Of a DNA stretch of 64,000 nucleotides, positions 49,593-64,000 are shown one piece after another (within the stretch, counting starts at the first letter, position 1; every line of letters begins with the position of its first letter). The stretch is from positions 7,068,001 to 7,132,000 of the forward strand of contig OZ059895.1 of assembly GCA_964057225.1 (NCBI GenBank), in the 5' to 3' direction. Made by a program: the position numbers and the translations under genes. The DNA comes from Auanema rhodensis (lineage: Eukaryota > Animalia > Nematoda). Under the pieces are notes generated by a model. It made no database searches, was not told where the DNA came from, and worked only from the letters and a program-made list of their open reading frames with translations.

Positions 49593-52500
49593 TTATTTGC
49601 TTGGTTCCGAAAGATCCAATAGGTTCTCAATCCTGGCAACCGTTTTAGCAACATCGCTCACTTTATTGTCCGAATCTGCCCTACTGTCTCCATTGCATCC
49701 ATCGTCTTCACTAGTTTCTTCATCTTCATACTCTTCCTCGCTTTCATCTTCTTCCTCTTCATCGTCTTCATCGTCTTCTTCCTCGTCTTCATCGTCATCA
49801 TCATCGTCATCCTCTTCTTCATCTTCATCCTCTTCTTCCTCATCTTCGTCTTCGTCGTCTTCTTCATCTTCCTCTTCTTCCCAATTCAAAGTTTCTTCAG
49901 GGGCATTAGGATCTCTTCGAAGAGAAGGATCAGAGGAAATCTAAAAATAATTGATAGAACTTTAGTACTTTAATTTTCTCATATAGATATTTACATCTGG
50001 AAAGACAGGAAGTTCCTTATATTTGGTGCACTTTTGATTGAGGACGTGTGACAATGATCCAAGCTGAAACTGATCTCTTTCTTTAAAGCTGCTTTGAGGA
50101 GCAGGCGCTGGTTTCTTGTACATGAACATTTCTTCAGCATGTTCAGAAAGAACAGTAGTATTAAAGAGTAAATTTCTCAAAAATCGGCATCTATAAAAAA
50201 AAGAAAAAATCAATCTAGTAATTGAAAACTACATTTACCTGTCTCTAACATCATAACTTAAGTCGAAACGAGCCAGTTGGAGAACATACTGAACAAGCTT
50301 TTCACACTCTTCTCTATTTACCATCCATAGCTTGACGGCTAACTTCAAAGCTTCCAGCTATAATACACAGATAATTCCTATATACAAAGAAAAATTCAGA
50401 CCTTAACAATTTCATTTTCATTGGAGAAATTTTTGGCCAAAATGCGTAGAAAATCTGGAGCCATATGTCCCAACTACAAATCAGAATAAGGGACAATTTA
50501 AGTTTTGAGCTTACCTTTGATACATGTGTTGCCACCAACCAAACTACACAAGCTCTTGCAGCAGGAGCTTGTATGGTGTTTATTAAACGTACAAGTCTAG
50601 TAAGTAAAGGAAGAGGAGCATCAGCATGCAACAGCCTGAACGCAAAATTAATTAATTAGGAATTGGAATGTCTAGTTCACCTTTTTAAAACTACTACGGC
50701 ACAGCAAACGACATTTTCATTCGGTGATGCAATAAGTTGCACAAGTCCAGACATGCACTGTTCACTTACAGCGCCAACACGGACTGCACATCGTCCAATA
50801 GCCTCAACGGCTGGACCAGCCAGATCACTAATCGTCACATACGTCTGAAGCAAAGAAATGTAAGTATTATTATGTTTCATAGGCATACCTGAAGCTCTCT
50901 CAAAATAACGTGTACATTTGCTTCGGAAACCAAGCTTGTAAGTACATGAAGTTTTAACTCCCTCACGAATGAAGGATCCGATGACCGGACAAAAAATGAT
51001 TTCAGAAATGGATCAAACAAGCTCTAAAAAACACAATATTACGAATAAATATCAAACTATTAAACGATAGACGAAGATACAACAATTATACTTGTTGGTC
51101 CTCGCGTCTACAACAGTGAACCTCACAACCAAGATGAGGGTGGATGTCGAGTATGGCGTTTGAAGCAGAAAAAACAAACAATAGATAGAAATAATAAAGA
51201 AAAGTGACTAAGCATGCGCACAATTAACACACCACAACACGCTACTTGATTGATTGAAGAGATAGAACCGAAAGAATAGAAGAAAGCTACAAAAAGATTG
51301 AACGCTATCTCCGCCACCAAACCCCGAAGAGCACCAGCAAACGATACAAGTCTTTCATATATCACAAATAATCCAGTTAGTAAGACTTCTACTGTTAATT
51401 CGTATTAGTGGTTTCTGGGGCTGAGACAACACGAGTACTCCACACTCATCCTGGGATGCGGGCCCACTTTTGATATTGCGAAAGTGCCTGGTTGTACCGG
51501 GTTCCGTTCGCAAATTGTAGCCATATTCAGAAGAACGACGTACTGAACTTCACGAGGTCCTCGAAGAAGACGAACTAGAGCACGAGCAACCTAAAGGAGA
51601 TTATGATATTTTAAAAATTGAAACGATCCTCACTTGTGAAATTTGTGATTTTGGAGCAACGTGATAGAATAGCTGAGTTACAGACATCACAACACTACAG
51701 TTCCGAGACTAAACAAAGAATTAAGTTAAGTTTATTAATTAAGACGCAAAAATACTTGCAACAAAGGTCGAGCTGAACTAAGCAAAAGAGTTATATCAGG
51801 ATCTGGAGCATCACTATTATCAGGATTAGCTAACTCTGAGCGAGCATAACGAGTAAGTAATCCAATCATTATTACCTAAATATTATTTATATTCAGCAAT
51901 AGTACAGGTAAAAATAGACCTGTCCCCATTCATCTACATCTGCTAAAACCCGACACAATGCTCGATAATGTTTATGAATTAAATCAAATCTTGTTGGGCA
52001 AATCTGTAAGCTTAATTTATCAGGAACAATTTTATTATTGTATAACCTCTTCGAATGCATAAACGGCACTTCCAAGAACTAAACTTCGTCGGTCAGCAAG
52101 TAAGAAATCAATGCAATCAATAAGTTCATTTTCAAGATCAGGATCTAGAGAATACAATTTAGGAATTGCATGAGCAGCAACCTGAAAAGATTTAGAAATA
52201 ATATTAGCTACAGATAAATATTTACCTTCCTAACGTATGGACTCATATCTCTTACACAATCTTTAATAGCTAAAAGCATAATAGGAGAGATCATTCCTAC
52301 TCGAATTGAAGACAATACTCGTAAAGCACTGGCCCGAATCAGCTGATTATGATCCTAAAATTATTATAACTCATATAATAAAATTTTTTAAATTTTACTT
52401 TTAAAGCCTTTTGAAATGTAGAAATTGATAAAAGAGCTAAATCTTGTTGCTCTTCAGCATATCGTACTAAATAAACGTACACCAGCTTTTTGAGCTAAAG

Positions 52501-58907: not shown

Positions 58908-59810
58908 TTAAGAATATGAAAATAATCTACAAAGTTTTTTAATTGGAAAGCAAACAGCTTCTCCTAATAGACGACAGACATTGTTAAACGACATTGGAGG
59001 TCTAGCACCGTTTGTATAACGTACAAAGGTGAAGCCATCACCATAACTACTTTCCAAATGATAATAGTTTCTGAAATTCACAATAGTTTGACTGTACAAC
59101 ACTGTAGCACAGAAAGCTATAGGCTTTATTTGATATTGACAAAATTAATTGGAAAAACTTACAAAAGAGTGTCATGATGTATGAAGCCGTTCGTTTTATA
59201 AAACGAAATTGCAGCTAGATTAGTTGATAATACATGTAAAAATACGGCGCGTGGATACGGTGGGCTTTCAACAATCTTAAGCAATTAATGAAAAATTTTA
59301 AATATGGTCTTAAGATGAACCGTATCCAACAAATGACCAAGAAGTCTTGAAGCTAAACCCGCTCGTCGATATTCATTGTGCACTGCTAGGGATAAAATAT
59401 ATACCACATGCGAACTAGTATCAGACAGTATCTCACGATCCTTAACAGATCATTAGTTTCATAATTGGTGTTCTAACAAACCTCCATGTTACAATGAAGA
59501 ATTTTCTTTGTTTCTGATACCATAATGGCTGCTAATCGATTACCATCAAAGAGTCCGTGACTAATTAATGAGCCTGACACCACTTCTTCATACCTGAAAA
59601 AAAGATATTTCGAATGGTTCTTTCAAAAACAAAGAAAAAAAGATGTGAGACTCACCAGCAATCAGGATATTGAATTGGAAATGATGCTGTACAAATAGCT
59701 CGAACATCAGGCAAGTCAGAGGGCACTAATGGTCTTAGAATAAGTCGACGAACTAAATCGCTTTCAGACCGAAGGAGAGAATCACATTCATCTTTTAGAC
59801 TACACGGCAT
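58908..59810 (-). CDS. NAA60: N-alpha-acetyltransferase 60 (NatF)-like GNAT
   Basis: [75 protein letters not shown], and an amphipathic Cys-containing C-tail typical of NAA60. Confidence 0.88.
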
Positions 59811-60958
59811 TTTGTCCAAGACTTAAAGTCCATTCATATCGTCATCAAATACATTAAATTCTGGGAGAATTGAAGTACAGGGTTCAACGATTGTCAATTT
59901 AGTAAAATAATGTGATTACTCGGAGAAGAAGAAAGACGATGACGAGGCAAACCAGGAATCGAACTTTAGATGGAACATTGGCTCATAAGACCCATGAACC
60001 GATCGAACTGAAAATAATTGCTAGCTGACGATTTATGAGACAATTAATATGGGGTAGCGCTACAAACACTATGACCTCAGGGGAATATATTTAAGACATT
60101 GGGTCCATGTCTTATTTGGTCTATATAGACTTAAGAAGCTAGACACTATACAAACCATATATATGACAAATACGGACATTTTAAACTTACTTTGATCGAA
60201 AATAAAACTGATTTAAACTTGGTCGTGGGCAAAGGCAAGTTCTAAATGAAAACATTATTTCATTATATTAATATGAACTGATAAAATAGAAGAGTTCAGA
60301 CGAACGAAACAAAATAGAAAAATATGTTTAAAATGTTAACTAAAGAGGAGACAACGTGATTCAAAGAAAATTCCCAAGATAGTTATACATTTAACCCGAG
60401 ACTTTACGGGGATTCAAACAAATCAGTGTTGAACAATTCAACAGTGGCAGAAAATAAATTATAGAAACAAAGGGCAGCATTAGATCCACATTTAAAATTG
60501 TAACAGATGGAGTTACGTTTGTAAAAGATGATGGATCGAGTTTCACAGAAACTGATATCAGCATAATCAGTTCATCAAAAGCTTGCTGACTTTATCTCAT
60601 TAACTAATTCAGCTTTTAATTCGAAATAGCTGTGCAATTCAAGTCAAGAACTAGCATGATTCCAGAAAAAATAAAAGAGTCATGTAACATATTGTTACAA
60701 AACATTGCAAATGCAAACAGAAATAATATACTTTTAAGAATGTATAAATATTTTAGCGATCAAACGCTGAGTTTATCATGTTCTAGATTTGAAAAAATAT
60801 TGTTATTGATTTCTAAAAAAACGACAATTGATGAACATAGTATAATCTCTAAAAACATTTCTTCTTTTGATGAATACTTCATAAAGATAAATATAAATAA
60901 CGCAACAATAACAACTTTATAGATTACAAACAACTACTCTTAGAGCTTCCTACTTCAT

Positions 60959-62760
60959 TTACTTTCTGGTATTAAAATATGCAGGAGCTATTAGATACGC
61001 TGTGTTGTTCAGGGACGAAGCTGAATGGTCAAATATATGGCTAAAATGAATAGAAGAAAACATACTCATGCTGACCCAGTCCATTAGTTTAGTCCGGATT
61101 TCCTGATCACTAAGATTGGAATAGTCAAGACGCCGAATGTACATATGCTGTAAGAAAGAACTGCTCAATAAGCATTTGTTATTCATGAAAGAGCACATAC
61201 AAAGAGAAGCTGCCTAGTTGTAAGAGAATCGATGTATGATGGTAATGTTTCATCCAACAAACGTAAAAGCTTGACTCTGTTATTAAGACGTCCTTGAGTG
61301 TTAGGAACTGGATAGAGACCTTGTAACTTGCAGACTTTGTTCTAAATTTCGATCGGTCATTACTAACTAGATGAATACTCTTACAAAAACATCTCCTGAT
61401 AGTTTTTCCACTTTGGGCAAATCTATTTCACTAATCGAAGCAGGCTTAAAATGTTTTCGATGATGTACGTAAATAAACAAATAAAATTGCCTTCTTAAGA
61501 ATTTCGTGCAATTCAGGATATATTGAATTTGAGTTCTGGATTTCCATAGCAAAAAATTTTCTACGTTGCTCATCCGTCCAAAAATGACGAGTCAAAACGA
61601 CTCGGGGAAAGAAAATTCTGAAAAAGATTTGAATGTAACAGTAGGCACAACACTTTCTATTGCTGTTTTCAATAATCAACAATAGAAAAAGTATGCACAT
61701 ACACGCAGAACCCAATGAGATAAAAAGTTGCAGGTAGCGGGAGCAGGACAATAATCATTAAAGCTTTCAACGTTTCCGATGGCGTCTGTAAAATAAATGC
61801 TTCGGTATGTGAACGAAAACTGTAGGTTACTAAGATCATCTATTGGAACACTACATTATAATTATTTCACAGCACTCAATCTATACTAAAAGAACCTCAT
61901 CTGCTCCCGCACCTTTCGATTTATAGTGCCTATGTTTTCTGCTTCTATGAGCTTACACCGCCACCAAACCAAATGGCTACAGAAGAACTTACAGTAGAGC
62001 TATCAACACGTCACCAGGACCCGGAATTTGTAAGACGACAATGAGGAACATCATTTTCATGATTTCGCTACCACTCTAATAAAATGGAAGGTTTAAATAA
62101 GAACTCAAAATACTGTAAATTCAAGAAGCTGACACACTAGCGCAAGAAAAAGTAAGTAGACAACAGCAAATGAGGTTCCTTATTAATTCATATTTGGCAT
62201 ACCTGAACAAGAACTTCTAACTCTGACGTCGAAAGGGTACTTAGACTAGTCTTCCCTGACATTAAACCTCGACGAAGCTTAATATACGTTTTGATATCAT
62301 TTAAACACCATTTGGATCCTTTGAAAGAGAACGTTTATCTTTTTAAGAAAATACACATACATACCTTCAAAAACCAATTTGTTCAAAGCAGCTACTTTTG
62401 GCCATTTCTCTAAAAAGTTTTCCCATTTAAATCGAAGAGAGGTTGGGTCTGGAGGAGCAACCGGTGGAGGACCAGCAGAAGTAAATCTGGAAACAATTAA
62501 ATAAATAAAAAACAAAAACTTTGTAAAGAATGCAACTGCATTCGCATATATCAATCTAGGAATGAGAAGCATAACGATTAGTTGGAAAGCAATTGGATTT
62601 AGGATTCCAGTTCAGTTATGGGTGAACTAACAATTCAAAAACTCGTTCAATTTGCTATTTGCTATGGAAATAGGAAATAATACCTTATAGATGTTCTAAA
62701 TGAAGTCAGAGTAGGCAGGCGTAAAACCACAGTGGGATTCAAGGCTCTTCTTAACGACAT
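60959..62760 (-). CDS. LETMD1: LETM1-domain mitochondrial inner-membrane protein (LETMD1-like) with mutually exclusive exon 4
   Basis: Arg/Ser-rich presequence MSLRRALNPTVVLRLPTLTSFRTSIRF; KLVFEGSKWCLNDIK; LSTSELEVLVQ; TM exon; IFFPRVVLTRHFWTDEQRRKF; RVKLLRLLD; ends APAYFNTRK*. All exons join in phase. Confidence 0.8.
61703..61785 (-). CDS. LETMD1-like mutually exclusive exon B (83 nt, phase 0 to 2): TPSETLKALMIIVLLPLPATFYLIGFC(V)
   Basis: TTTTACAG acceptor, GTATGT donor, open frame, aligns without gaps to exon A. Confidence 0.85.
61993..62075 (-). CDS. LETMD1-like mutually exclusive exon A (83 nt, phase 0 to 2): SGSEIMKMMFLIVVLQIPGPGDVLIAL(L)
   Basis: TTTTATTAG acceptor, GTAAGT donor, open frame, same length and phase as exon B. 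Confidence 0.85.
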
Positions 62761-63279
62761 CCTGCAAGCAAAATCGTATTATTGTAAATATAAGAAAAAG
62801 TATAAATGAGAGCAAATACTGAACAGGTTATAAACCCCACGAACATACCATAACCAAGAAAAAGCGTTTGAGTACAATTTATTATTATTAATGATACAGG
62901 TAATCAGTTAATGAAAGAACAGAACAATTGAGAACAGTTACTATTATGGAGACTAGTAAGAATTAATGAAAAAATAATAAATATCAGGCAAGAAGTTAAT
63001 TATTATGGCAACAATTCTACACCAAGAAATTTAAGTACCCATTTTGCACATATAAATATACATATATACATATATGTATATATATATATTTTTTATTATT
63101 ATGAAAGATGACAGAAGTGCATACACGCTATATTCTTAAACGCCTAATACGTGCTGAAAAAACAAACAAACGGAAATTATGATACAGTCTTTTGTACAAA
63201 ATCAGAACTCTGGAAAATAAATATTCTCTTTTTATATTCGTGTTATTTCTTTTTCTTTCTGTGAACAAGGATGTAAAAA

Positions 63280-64000
63280 TCACAAACGTGTTATTTCGGC
63301 GGCTAACGAATTACCACTATCAGCTCTCTTCAAAGAACAGGCCTTATCAACACAGTATGAATCCGATAGGTCACCGAGAGTAGGTGATGGGTCGTCAGGA
63401 TGGTCAGGCTCTATTCCCTGTGAAATCATTGAATCCCCACCAGGACACAAGCCCGGCAACGAAGAGCCCGAAGTGTTAGCAGAGTCGCTAGTTAAAGCTA
63501 GTTGCTTGGGGGCAAATTCTGTAAACAAGCGGCAATAGGAGTTATATTCAAAAAATAACGATATTACCATATTTATCAACAATTTTCTTTTCTTCTCGTT
63601 CCAAAGCTTCTAGCATTTTTTGTTTTTCTCTCAATATATATTGCAGTTGAAGTGAACGAGCCGACAACTGAATAATTCGAGCAATATTCTGAACCAAAAA
63701 TATAGTTTAAGTTTGAAACTTGGAAGGCCTACTTGGAACAACACTACTAATCTCATTTGTAGCTGAGATGATATTATGCTTACTAGTGATGAATGTGATT
63801 CACCAATAACTGAGACACCATTAACGGCTATTACTACATCGCCTATAATCAATTATCTAGTTTTAAAATTGACAAGGAGTTTTAACCTCTCCTTATACCA
63901 GCTTTCGAAGCTGGGGCTCCATCTTGAACATAATCTACATAAGTAATACGTTCCACGGAATTTGTCCCACGTTTGAAAACGTATGACTGAACAAGATTAT
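63280..64000 (-). CDS. gras-1: GRASP/tamalin/CYTIP-like PDZ scaffold, 5' end outside the window; exons >64000-63887, 63842-63733, 63688-63568, 63518-63280
   Basis: PDZ segment [40 protein letters not shown], followed by the leucine-zipper [32 protein letters not shown]; C-terminal EITRL*. Confidence 0.85.

Follow-up and report, generated by a model that had tools for sequence, protein, structure and literature searches.

The window, a stretch of 64,000 nucleotides of the nematode Auanema rhodensis in whose coordinates all positions below are given, carries on its minus strand a gene for a LETM1_RBD-domain, LETMD1-like protein, with a coding region at 60959-62760 that runs from an ATG at 62760 to a stop codon at 60959-60961. 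Our gene model takes its joints from spliced contigs, with the frames verified exon by exon. It comprises exon 1 (62684-62760), exon 2 (62364-62486) and the constitutive exon 3 (62203-62317), which ends …SELEVLVQ in phase 0 and whose donor joins one of two alternative exons, A (61993-62075) or B (61703-61785). Either of these is accepted by the constitutive exon 5 (61491-61617; IFFPRVVLTRHFWTDEQRR…), which is translated as IFFPRVVLTRHFW…, and the gene then continues through exon 6 (61385-61444), exon 7 (61201-61341), exon 8 (61066-61147) and a last exon, reaching from 61020 down to about 60808, that holds the stop codon. Whichever of the two exons is used, the predicted protein measures about 289 residues. 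The intron after exon 5 (61445-61490, minus strand) is of the GC-AG type (…CTTAAGAAG/GCAATT…TTTTAAG/CCT) and is backed by spliced contigs in all four runs, where it appears as CT..GC on the plus strand. A probable trans-splice acceptor, ttgcttgcag/G at 62764/62763 on the minus strand, lies three bases before the ATG; the contig of run X4 ends exactly there, with depth falling from 151 to about 18-36 upstream, and the contigs of runs X1-X3 continue past the ATG through a short spacer, within 62761-63043, toward an upstream PDZ gene, giving the locus an operon-like look. Several public models fuse PDZ and LETM1 sequences (Ostertagia P0041, Necator P0061 and P0069, Nippostrongylus P0076, H. contortus P0060), and these are probably mis-joined operon neighbours.

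The family assignment was approached through single exons in both the Pfam and the homology searches. Exon 5 alone matched positions 41-76 of the Pfam profile PF07766 (LETM1_RBD) with an E value of 4.5e-4 and 20.3 bits, under the 25.3-bit cut-off, and exons A, B and 3, scanned singly, gave no Pfam match because they are too short; all full-length orthologues bear PF07766. When the 42 residues of exon 5 were compared by phmmer with a library of 1.84 billion proteins, 22 matches were returned, the named ones being nematode 'Letm1 RBD domain-containing' proteins, and they fell into an A-type group (…VVLQIPGPGDILILL-IFFPR), a B-type group (…LLPLPLT.Y.IG.A.-IFFPR) and a handful of gene models in which both exons are read as one. 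A word search identified orthologues in C. elegans, C. briggsae, C. nigoni, H. contortus, Necator, Pristionchus, Diploscapter, Brugia and others, and the profile word search for the family returned matches from nematodes only. A profile search of the PDB gave a marginal match to the Mdm38 RBD (E 0.039), and no structure there spans the membrane segment. Assignment to LETMD1, as opposed to LETM1 or LETM2, fits the architecture on which it is based, namely a protein of about 289 residues with the RBD only; nematode LETM1-type proteins form separate clusters and are longer.

Exons A and B are both 83 nt long, have GT-AG borders and follow on from exon 3 in phase 0. Read on the minus strand, exon A translates as SGSEIMKMMFLIVVLQIPGPGDVLIAL plus 2 nt, follows the acceptor ttttattag, a weak UAG site, and precedes the donor gtaagt; it is the counterpart of C. 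elegans exon 4a and bears the conserved motif LQIPGPGD. Exon B translates as TPSETLKALMIIVLLPLPATFYLIGFC plus 2 nt, lies between the acceptor ttattttacag, a consensus-like CAG site, and the donor gtatgt, and is the counterpart of C. elegans 4b, with the motif LLPLP..FY. The codon left split by A or B is closed by the first base of exon 5, an A at 61617, which yields Leu after exon A and Val after exon B. Since both lengths are of the form 3n+2, double use or double skipping shifts the frame and leads to an early stop codon: inclusion of A and B together meets a stop 6 codons into exon B, and omission of both meets one at codon 16 of exon 5. The initial annotation, which had proposed this exon pair together with its phases, splice sites and frame argument, was accurate in all these points on the minus strand, including coordinates, lengths and peptides. 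It erred in stating that neither exon appears in the correct frame among the listed open reading frames, for exon B lies in one of the short ones (61669-61839, 56 aa). In register, A and B agree at 7 of 27 residues (26% amino acid identity) and 33 of 83 nucleotides, and their BLOSUM score was reached by 3 of 20,000 column permutations. This similarity is consistent with an old tandem duplication, although part of it comes from a common architecture with a polar start and a hydrophobic end.

Our evidence for transcript usage comes from four public runs, representing four samples of one study, which are stored as contigs and whose RNA nature is a guess and not on record. Over 60400-63100 the contigs were 100% identical to the window, with every intron removed at GT..AG borders (GC..AG after exon 5) and zero depth in the intron bins, including the bin at 61856-61946 between A and B. 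The joints 62203>62075, 62203>61785, 61993>61617 and 61703>61617, which the initial annotation had named as the junctions to look for, were all present in each of the four runs, and all four read CT..AC on the plus strand, that is, GT..AG on the minus. Exons A and B are thus both used, each joined to both flanking exons. Each formed a unitig of 141 nt (29+83+29) within a simple bubble that branches in exons 3 and 5. The k-mer depth of the unitigs, a rough measure, was 48.7, 41.1, 47.5 and 62.6 for A and 60.6, 53.9, 63.7 and 80.6 for B, so that A accounted for about 43-45% of the summed depth and the A:B ratio was alike in all four samples. Joints between A and B (61993>61785) and joints that skip both (62203>61617) were found in none of the contigs of the four runs, a form of storage that loses rare variants and so does not prove that messages with both exons or neither are lacking. 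Given the exact removal of introns, the source of the contigs can hardly be anything but spliced RNA. The labelling of the runs as RNA by guess would leave room for processed pseudogenes in DNA, but this reading is scarcely credible, as it requires two retrocopies, one per isoform and exon-identical in all four samples, together with zero depth in the introns of the source gene and a content of about 35% of the sampled gene words, a figure equal to the exon share of the stretch.

The closest known system is the C. elegans gene F30F8.9 (WBGene00009276), which encodes a Letm1 RBD protein with two isoforms of 288 residues and lies in our comparison locus L001 (chromosome I 7834564-7842227). Its exons 4a and 4b are the first entry in the catalogue of mutually exclusive (ME) exons of Kuroyanagi, Takei & Suzuki (2014, Worm 3:e28459; PMC4165533), where Table 1 lists them as 'Homologous ME', both of 83 nt (3n+2), identical to each other at 41% of nucleotides and 17.9% of amino acids and separated by an intron of 683 nt. 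They were validated by RT-PCR, with NMD dependence given as 'Yes' on the evidence of smg-2 animals, and of the 21 reads that mapped to the exons in L1 larvae of smg-2, 9 belonged to 4a (PMC4165533). The published coordinates correspond to L001:3281-3363, which encodes the A-type peptide SGSELIKMLTLIVILQIPGPGDILILM, and L001:4047-4129, which encodes the B-type peptide MPVEGPKMAIVTAFLPVPLSVYVFAFA. The initial annotation had suspected that the pair might already be annotated in C. elegans, and this is the case: NP_871881.1 (P0046) is the A-type and NP_492165.1 (P0028) the B-type isoform, both under CELE_F30F8.9. The gene lies between an upstream PDZ gene and a downstream GNAT acetyltransferase gene, an order common to the window (59000-64000), C. 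elegans (L001), H. contortus (L003) and P. pacificus (L005). Because the names and isoforms match, the published coordinates give A-type and B-type peptides and the neighbouring genes are alike, the pair in the window is the orthologue of the published and validated 4a/4b pair.

The two systems agree in the position of the exons between …LE.LVQ and FFPR…, in two lengths of 83 nt with the A-type exon ahead of the B-type, in LQIPGPGD within A and LP.P…Y within B, in the weak UAG acceptor of A, in the flanking genes and in the share of A, at 9 of 21 reads there and about 43-45% of unitig depth here. They differ in that the intervening intron (61786-61992, minus strand) measures 207 nt here as against 683 nt there, in that exon B has diverged (30% identity) whereas exon A is 70% identical, and in that dependence on NMD was demonstrated in C. 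elegans and is inferred in A. rhodensis. The exon pairs 6a/6b of coq-2 and 6a/6b of gba-3, which are also tabulated by Kuroyanagi and colleagues (PMC4165533), resemble the LETMD1-like pair as tandemly duplicated exons of equal, non-3n length for which NMD aids fidelity, but belong to different genes. As the same switch had been published for F30F8.9 in 2014, the exon pair of the window is genuine but unremarkable.

The pair is also widely conserved. Besides the window, loci from C. elegans, C. briggsae, H. contortus, B. pahangi, P. pacificus, S. carpocapsae and D. pachys were compared, and an A exon of 83 nt followed by a B exon of 83 nt, with open frames and GT-AG borders, was present in seven of these seven genomes as well as in the window, with an intervening intron of 107-683 nt in the other species. 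Exon A, on whose junctions and conservation the initial annotation had let its reading depend, was both joined in every run and retained at 83 nt in each of the seven other genomes. Since the pair occurs in clades III, IV and V, it is, by this comparison of genomic sequences, at least as old as Rhabditida. Both isoforms are annotated in the protein sets of C. briggsae, C. nigoni, H. contortus and Brugia pahangi, in addition to C. elegans. Further annotated proteins of the A type come from Mesorhabditis, Nippostrongylus, Pristionchus entomophagus (P0084), Aphelenchoides bicaudatus, Loa and Parascaris. By similarity, the species of the window falls among the clade V rhabditids, roughly as far from Caenorhabditis as from the strongylids. 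Within clade V, exon A is better conserved than exon B: exon A of the window is 70% identical to the A exons of C. elegans and H. contortus, and exon B is 30-41% identical to theirs. These data bear on the possibility that one exon alone is functional and the other is a decaying duplicate spliced as noise, a view that could draw on the 26% identity between A and B and on the many annotations that give a single isoform. We regard it as very improbable, since the unitig depths of the two exons are similar in all four samples, both exons have kept their length, open frames and splice sites in eight genomes of clades III-V, and exon A is the better kept of the two in clade V.

Some existing annotations of the family miss or distort the pair. 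In Pristionchus pacificus, an intact A-type exon of 83 nt (SPREVVKMISLITVLNIPGPGDILILL, with Asn for Gln; L005:1544-1626) lies inside an intron of the annotated B-only model. In Diploscapter pachys, exon A is intact and is split into 55+28 nt (L007:1984-2038 and 2149-2176) by an extra GT-AG intron of 110 nt that sits between IQIPG and PGDLLILM, and the exon is missing from the annotated protein. Both exons, or a retained intron, are read through in the models P0016, P0020, P0025, P0030, P0068 and P0085, which come from Steinernema carpocapsae, S. glaseri, C. angaria, Brugia timori and Aphelenchoides besseyi. In the C. nigoni model P0033, additional non-homologous sequence stands ahead of exon B. 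It is the ME pair that has led to these errors of annotation, in P0033 as in the read-through models.

Taken with the C. elegans precedent, we hold with high confidence that A and B form a genuine homologous ME pair, orthologous to F30F8.9 4a/4b, in which exclusivity is mainly a matter of the reading frame. The proposal of the initial annotation that mutually exclusive exons swap a hydrophobic segment just upstream of FFPRxxLTRHFW is borne out by the contigs, by the frame logic and by this orthology. Each mRNA would take either A or B and so encode one of two versions of a hydrophobic segment of 27-28 residues ahead of the invariant FFPRxxLTRHFW. Exclusivity would arise mainly from the reading frame, as messages with both exons or neither would carry an early stop codon. 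Non-3n ME exons are known to give frame-shifted products that are cleared by NMD (PMC4165533), and by analogy with the C. elegans pair the premature-stop mRNAs of A. rhodensis would presumably be cleared in the same way. What tips the choice between the exons is probably the weakness of the UAG acceptor of A next to the consensus-like CAG of B, together with other regulators; the acceptor of A is UAG in six of the eight species and that of B is CAG in six of eight, which fits a competition of a weak proximal with a strong distal site. Steric exclusion of splicing between A and B was also considered and is ruled out, because the intervening intron of 207 nt, like those of at least 107 nt elsewhere, is long enough for splicing, with a limit of about 40 nt.

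A further possibility is that the choice is set at splicing by RNA structure, through a docking-site/selector or looping-out arrangement, rather than by NMD; in its detailed form, intron 3 would pair with the intron between A and B, so that exon A is looped out and B is favoured. Inverted-repeat arms of 17 nt with 88% complementarity (62165-62181 in intron 3 and 61889-61905 in the A-B intron, minus strand) would indeed loop out exon A, and a 12-nt pair joins 61985-61996, over the donor of exon A, with 62111-62122, although an AU-rich match of 12 nt is about what chance would give in 700 nt. The duplex energy between the two introns had a z score of -2.7 in the window and of -3.2 in P. pacificus, with 0 of 60 shuffles as good in either case, against shuffles that preserved mononucleotide composition only and were thus liberal. 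No excess pairing was seen in C. elegans (z +0.5), C. briggsae (-0.4), H. contortus (-1.1), B. pahangi (-0.2) or S. carpocapsae (+1.7). With an excess in the window and P. pacificus only, a conserved structural switch is not supported, and the C. elegans pair visibly leans on NMD (PMC4165533); we therefore consider it unlikely, both in general and in the looped-out form, that RNA structure decides the choice.

Two features of the intron downstream of exon A may be recorded here. The window has two copies of the 13-mer GGTTTGGTGGCGG, at 61958-61970 and 51311-51323, both on the minus strand, with 0.01 occurrences expected, and the flanks of the two copies are only loosely alike. The first copy lies 23-35 nt into the intron downstream of the exon A donor, where intronic splicing enhancers are typically located. 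Inspection by eye also showed a G/U-rich element after exon A in the window, Caenorhabditis and Brugia, but none in P. pacificus, S. carpocapsae or D. pachys.

At the protein level, the peptides of A and B (27 residues) have in common Glu4, Lys7 (in most species) and Pro18 and are similarly hydrophobic overall. They differ in that A has Gln16 (Asn in Pristionchus), Gly21 and Asp/Glu22, and B has Pro16 (seven of eight species) and Tyr22 (eight of eight). When the two C. elegans isoforms were modelled by AlphaFold2 with isoform-specific alignments, both showed the same secondary structure, in which a first helix ends at residue 119, the chain breaks at 120-124 round the common Pro123 and another helix runs from 125 into FFPR, with pLDDT over the alternative segment low for A (46-54) and moderate for B (65-72). 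The initial annotation had contrasted a segment with Gln, Asp and a PGPG turn in A with a more purely hydrophobic one in B. The part of this concerning residues stood, in that Gln and Asp/Glu on one side and Pro and Tyr on the other are conserved, but the contrast of a turn with a plain helix is not supported, because the models show the same helix-break-helix centred on the common proline. The consistent difference is chemical, Gln plus Asp/Glu versus Pro plus Tyr, and it is robust across the predicted peptides compared; we infer that a functional difference between the isoforms may lie in these residues, Gln16 and Asp/Glu22 of A as against Pro16 and Tyr22 of B. A functional difference is known for the isoforms of coq-2; to our knowledge, none is known for those of F30F8.9.

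The LETM1 family offers a possible point of reference for this difference. Mammalian LETMD1 and LETM1 likewise have the LETM1_RBD domain after a single proline-containing hydrophobic segment, and we found no report of alternative membrane-segment exons for them in the literature searched, nor anything relevant on mutually exclusive splicing with LETM1 or LETMD1. Glu221 (E221) in the membrane helix of mouse LETM1 is needed for Ca2+ flux (PMC5037442), which makes the Asp/Glu of exon A worth noting. LETMD1, the vertebrate member of the family, is needed for brown-fat mitochondrial function, and the membrane topology of the family is disputed (PMC11467678 versus PMC10290150). Reasoning from the requirement for Glu221 in the paralogue LETM1, it is conceivable, if rather doubtful, that the exon switch toggles a membrane-embedded polar pair, so that the isoforms could be ion-competent and ion-inert, or differently assembling, LETMD1-like forms kept through the whole history of Rhabditida, with A, not the LETMD1-typical B, the more tightly constrained in clade V.

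The discovery value of the pair is small, as the C. elegans catalogue of 2014 had already listed and validated it, and public protein sets of several nematodes include both isoforms. Our additions are modest, consisting of the presence and use of the pair in this species, its conservation over three nematode clades and the gaps in annotation, where exon A is missing in P. pacificus and D. pachys and is read through together with B in others. What they provide is evolutionary depth, not a new kind of feature, and their comparative value lies in two exons that have each stayed fixed at exactly 83 nt in clades III, IV and V.
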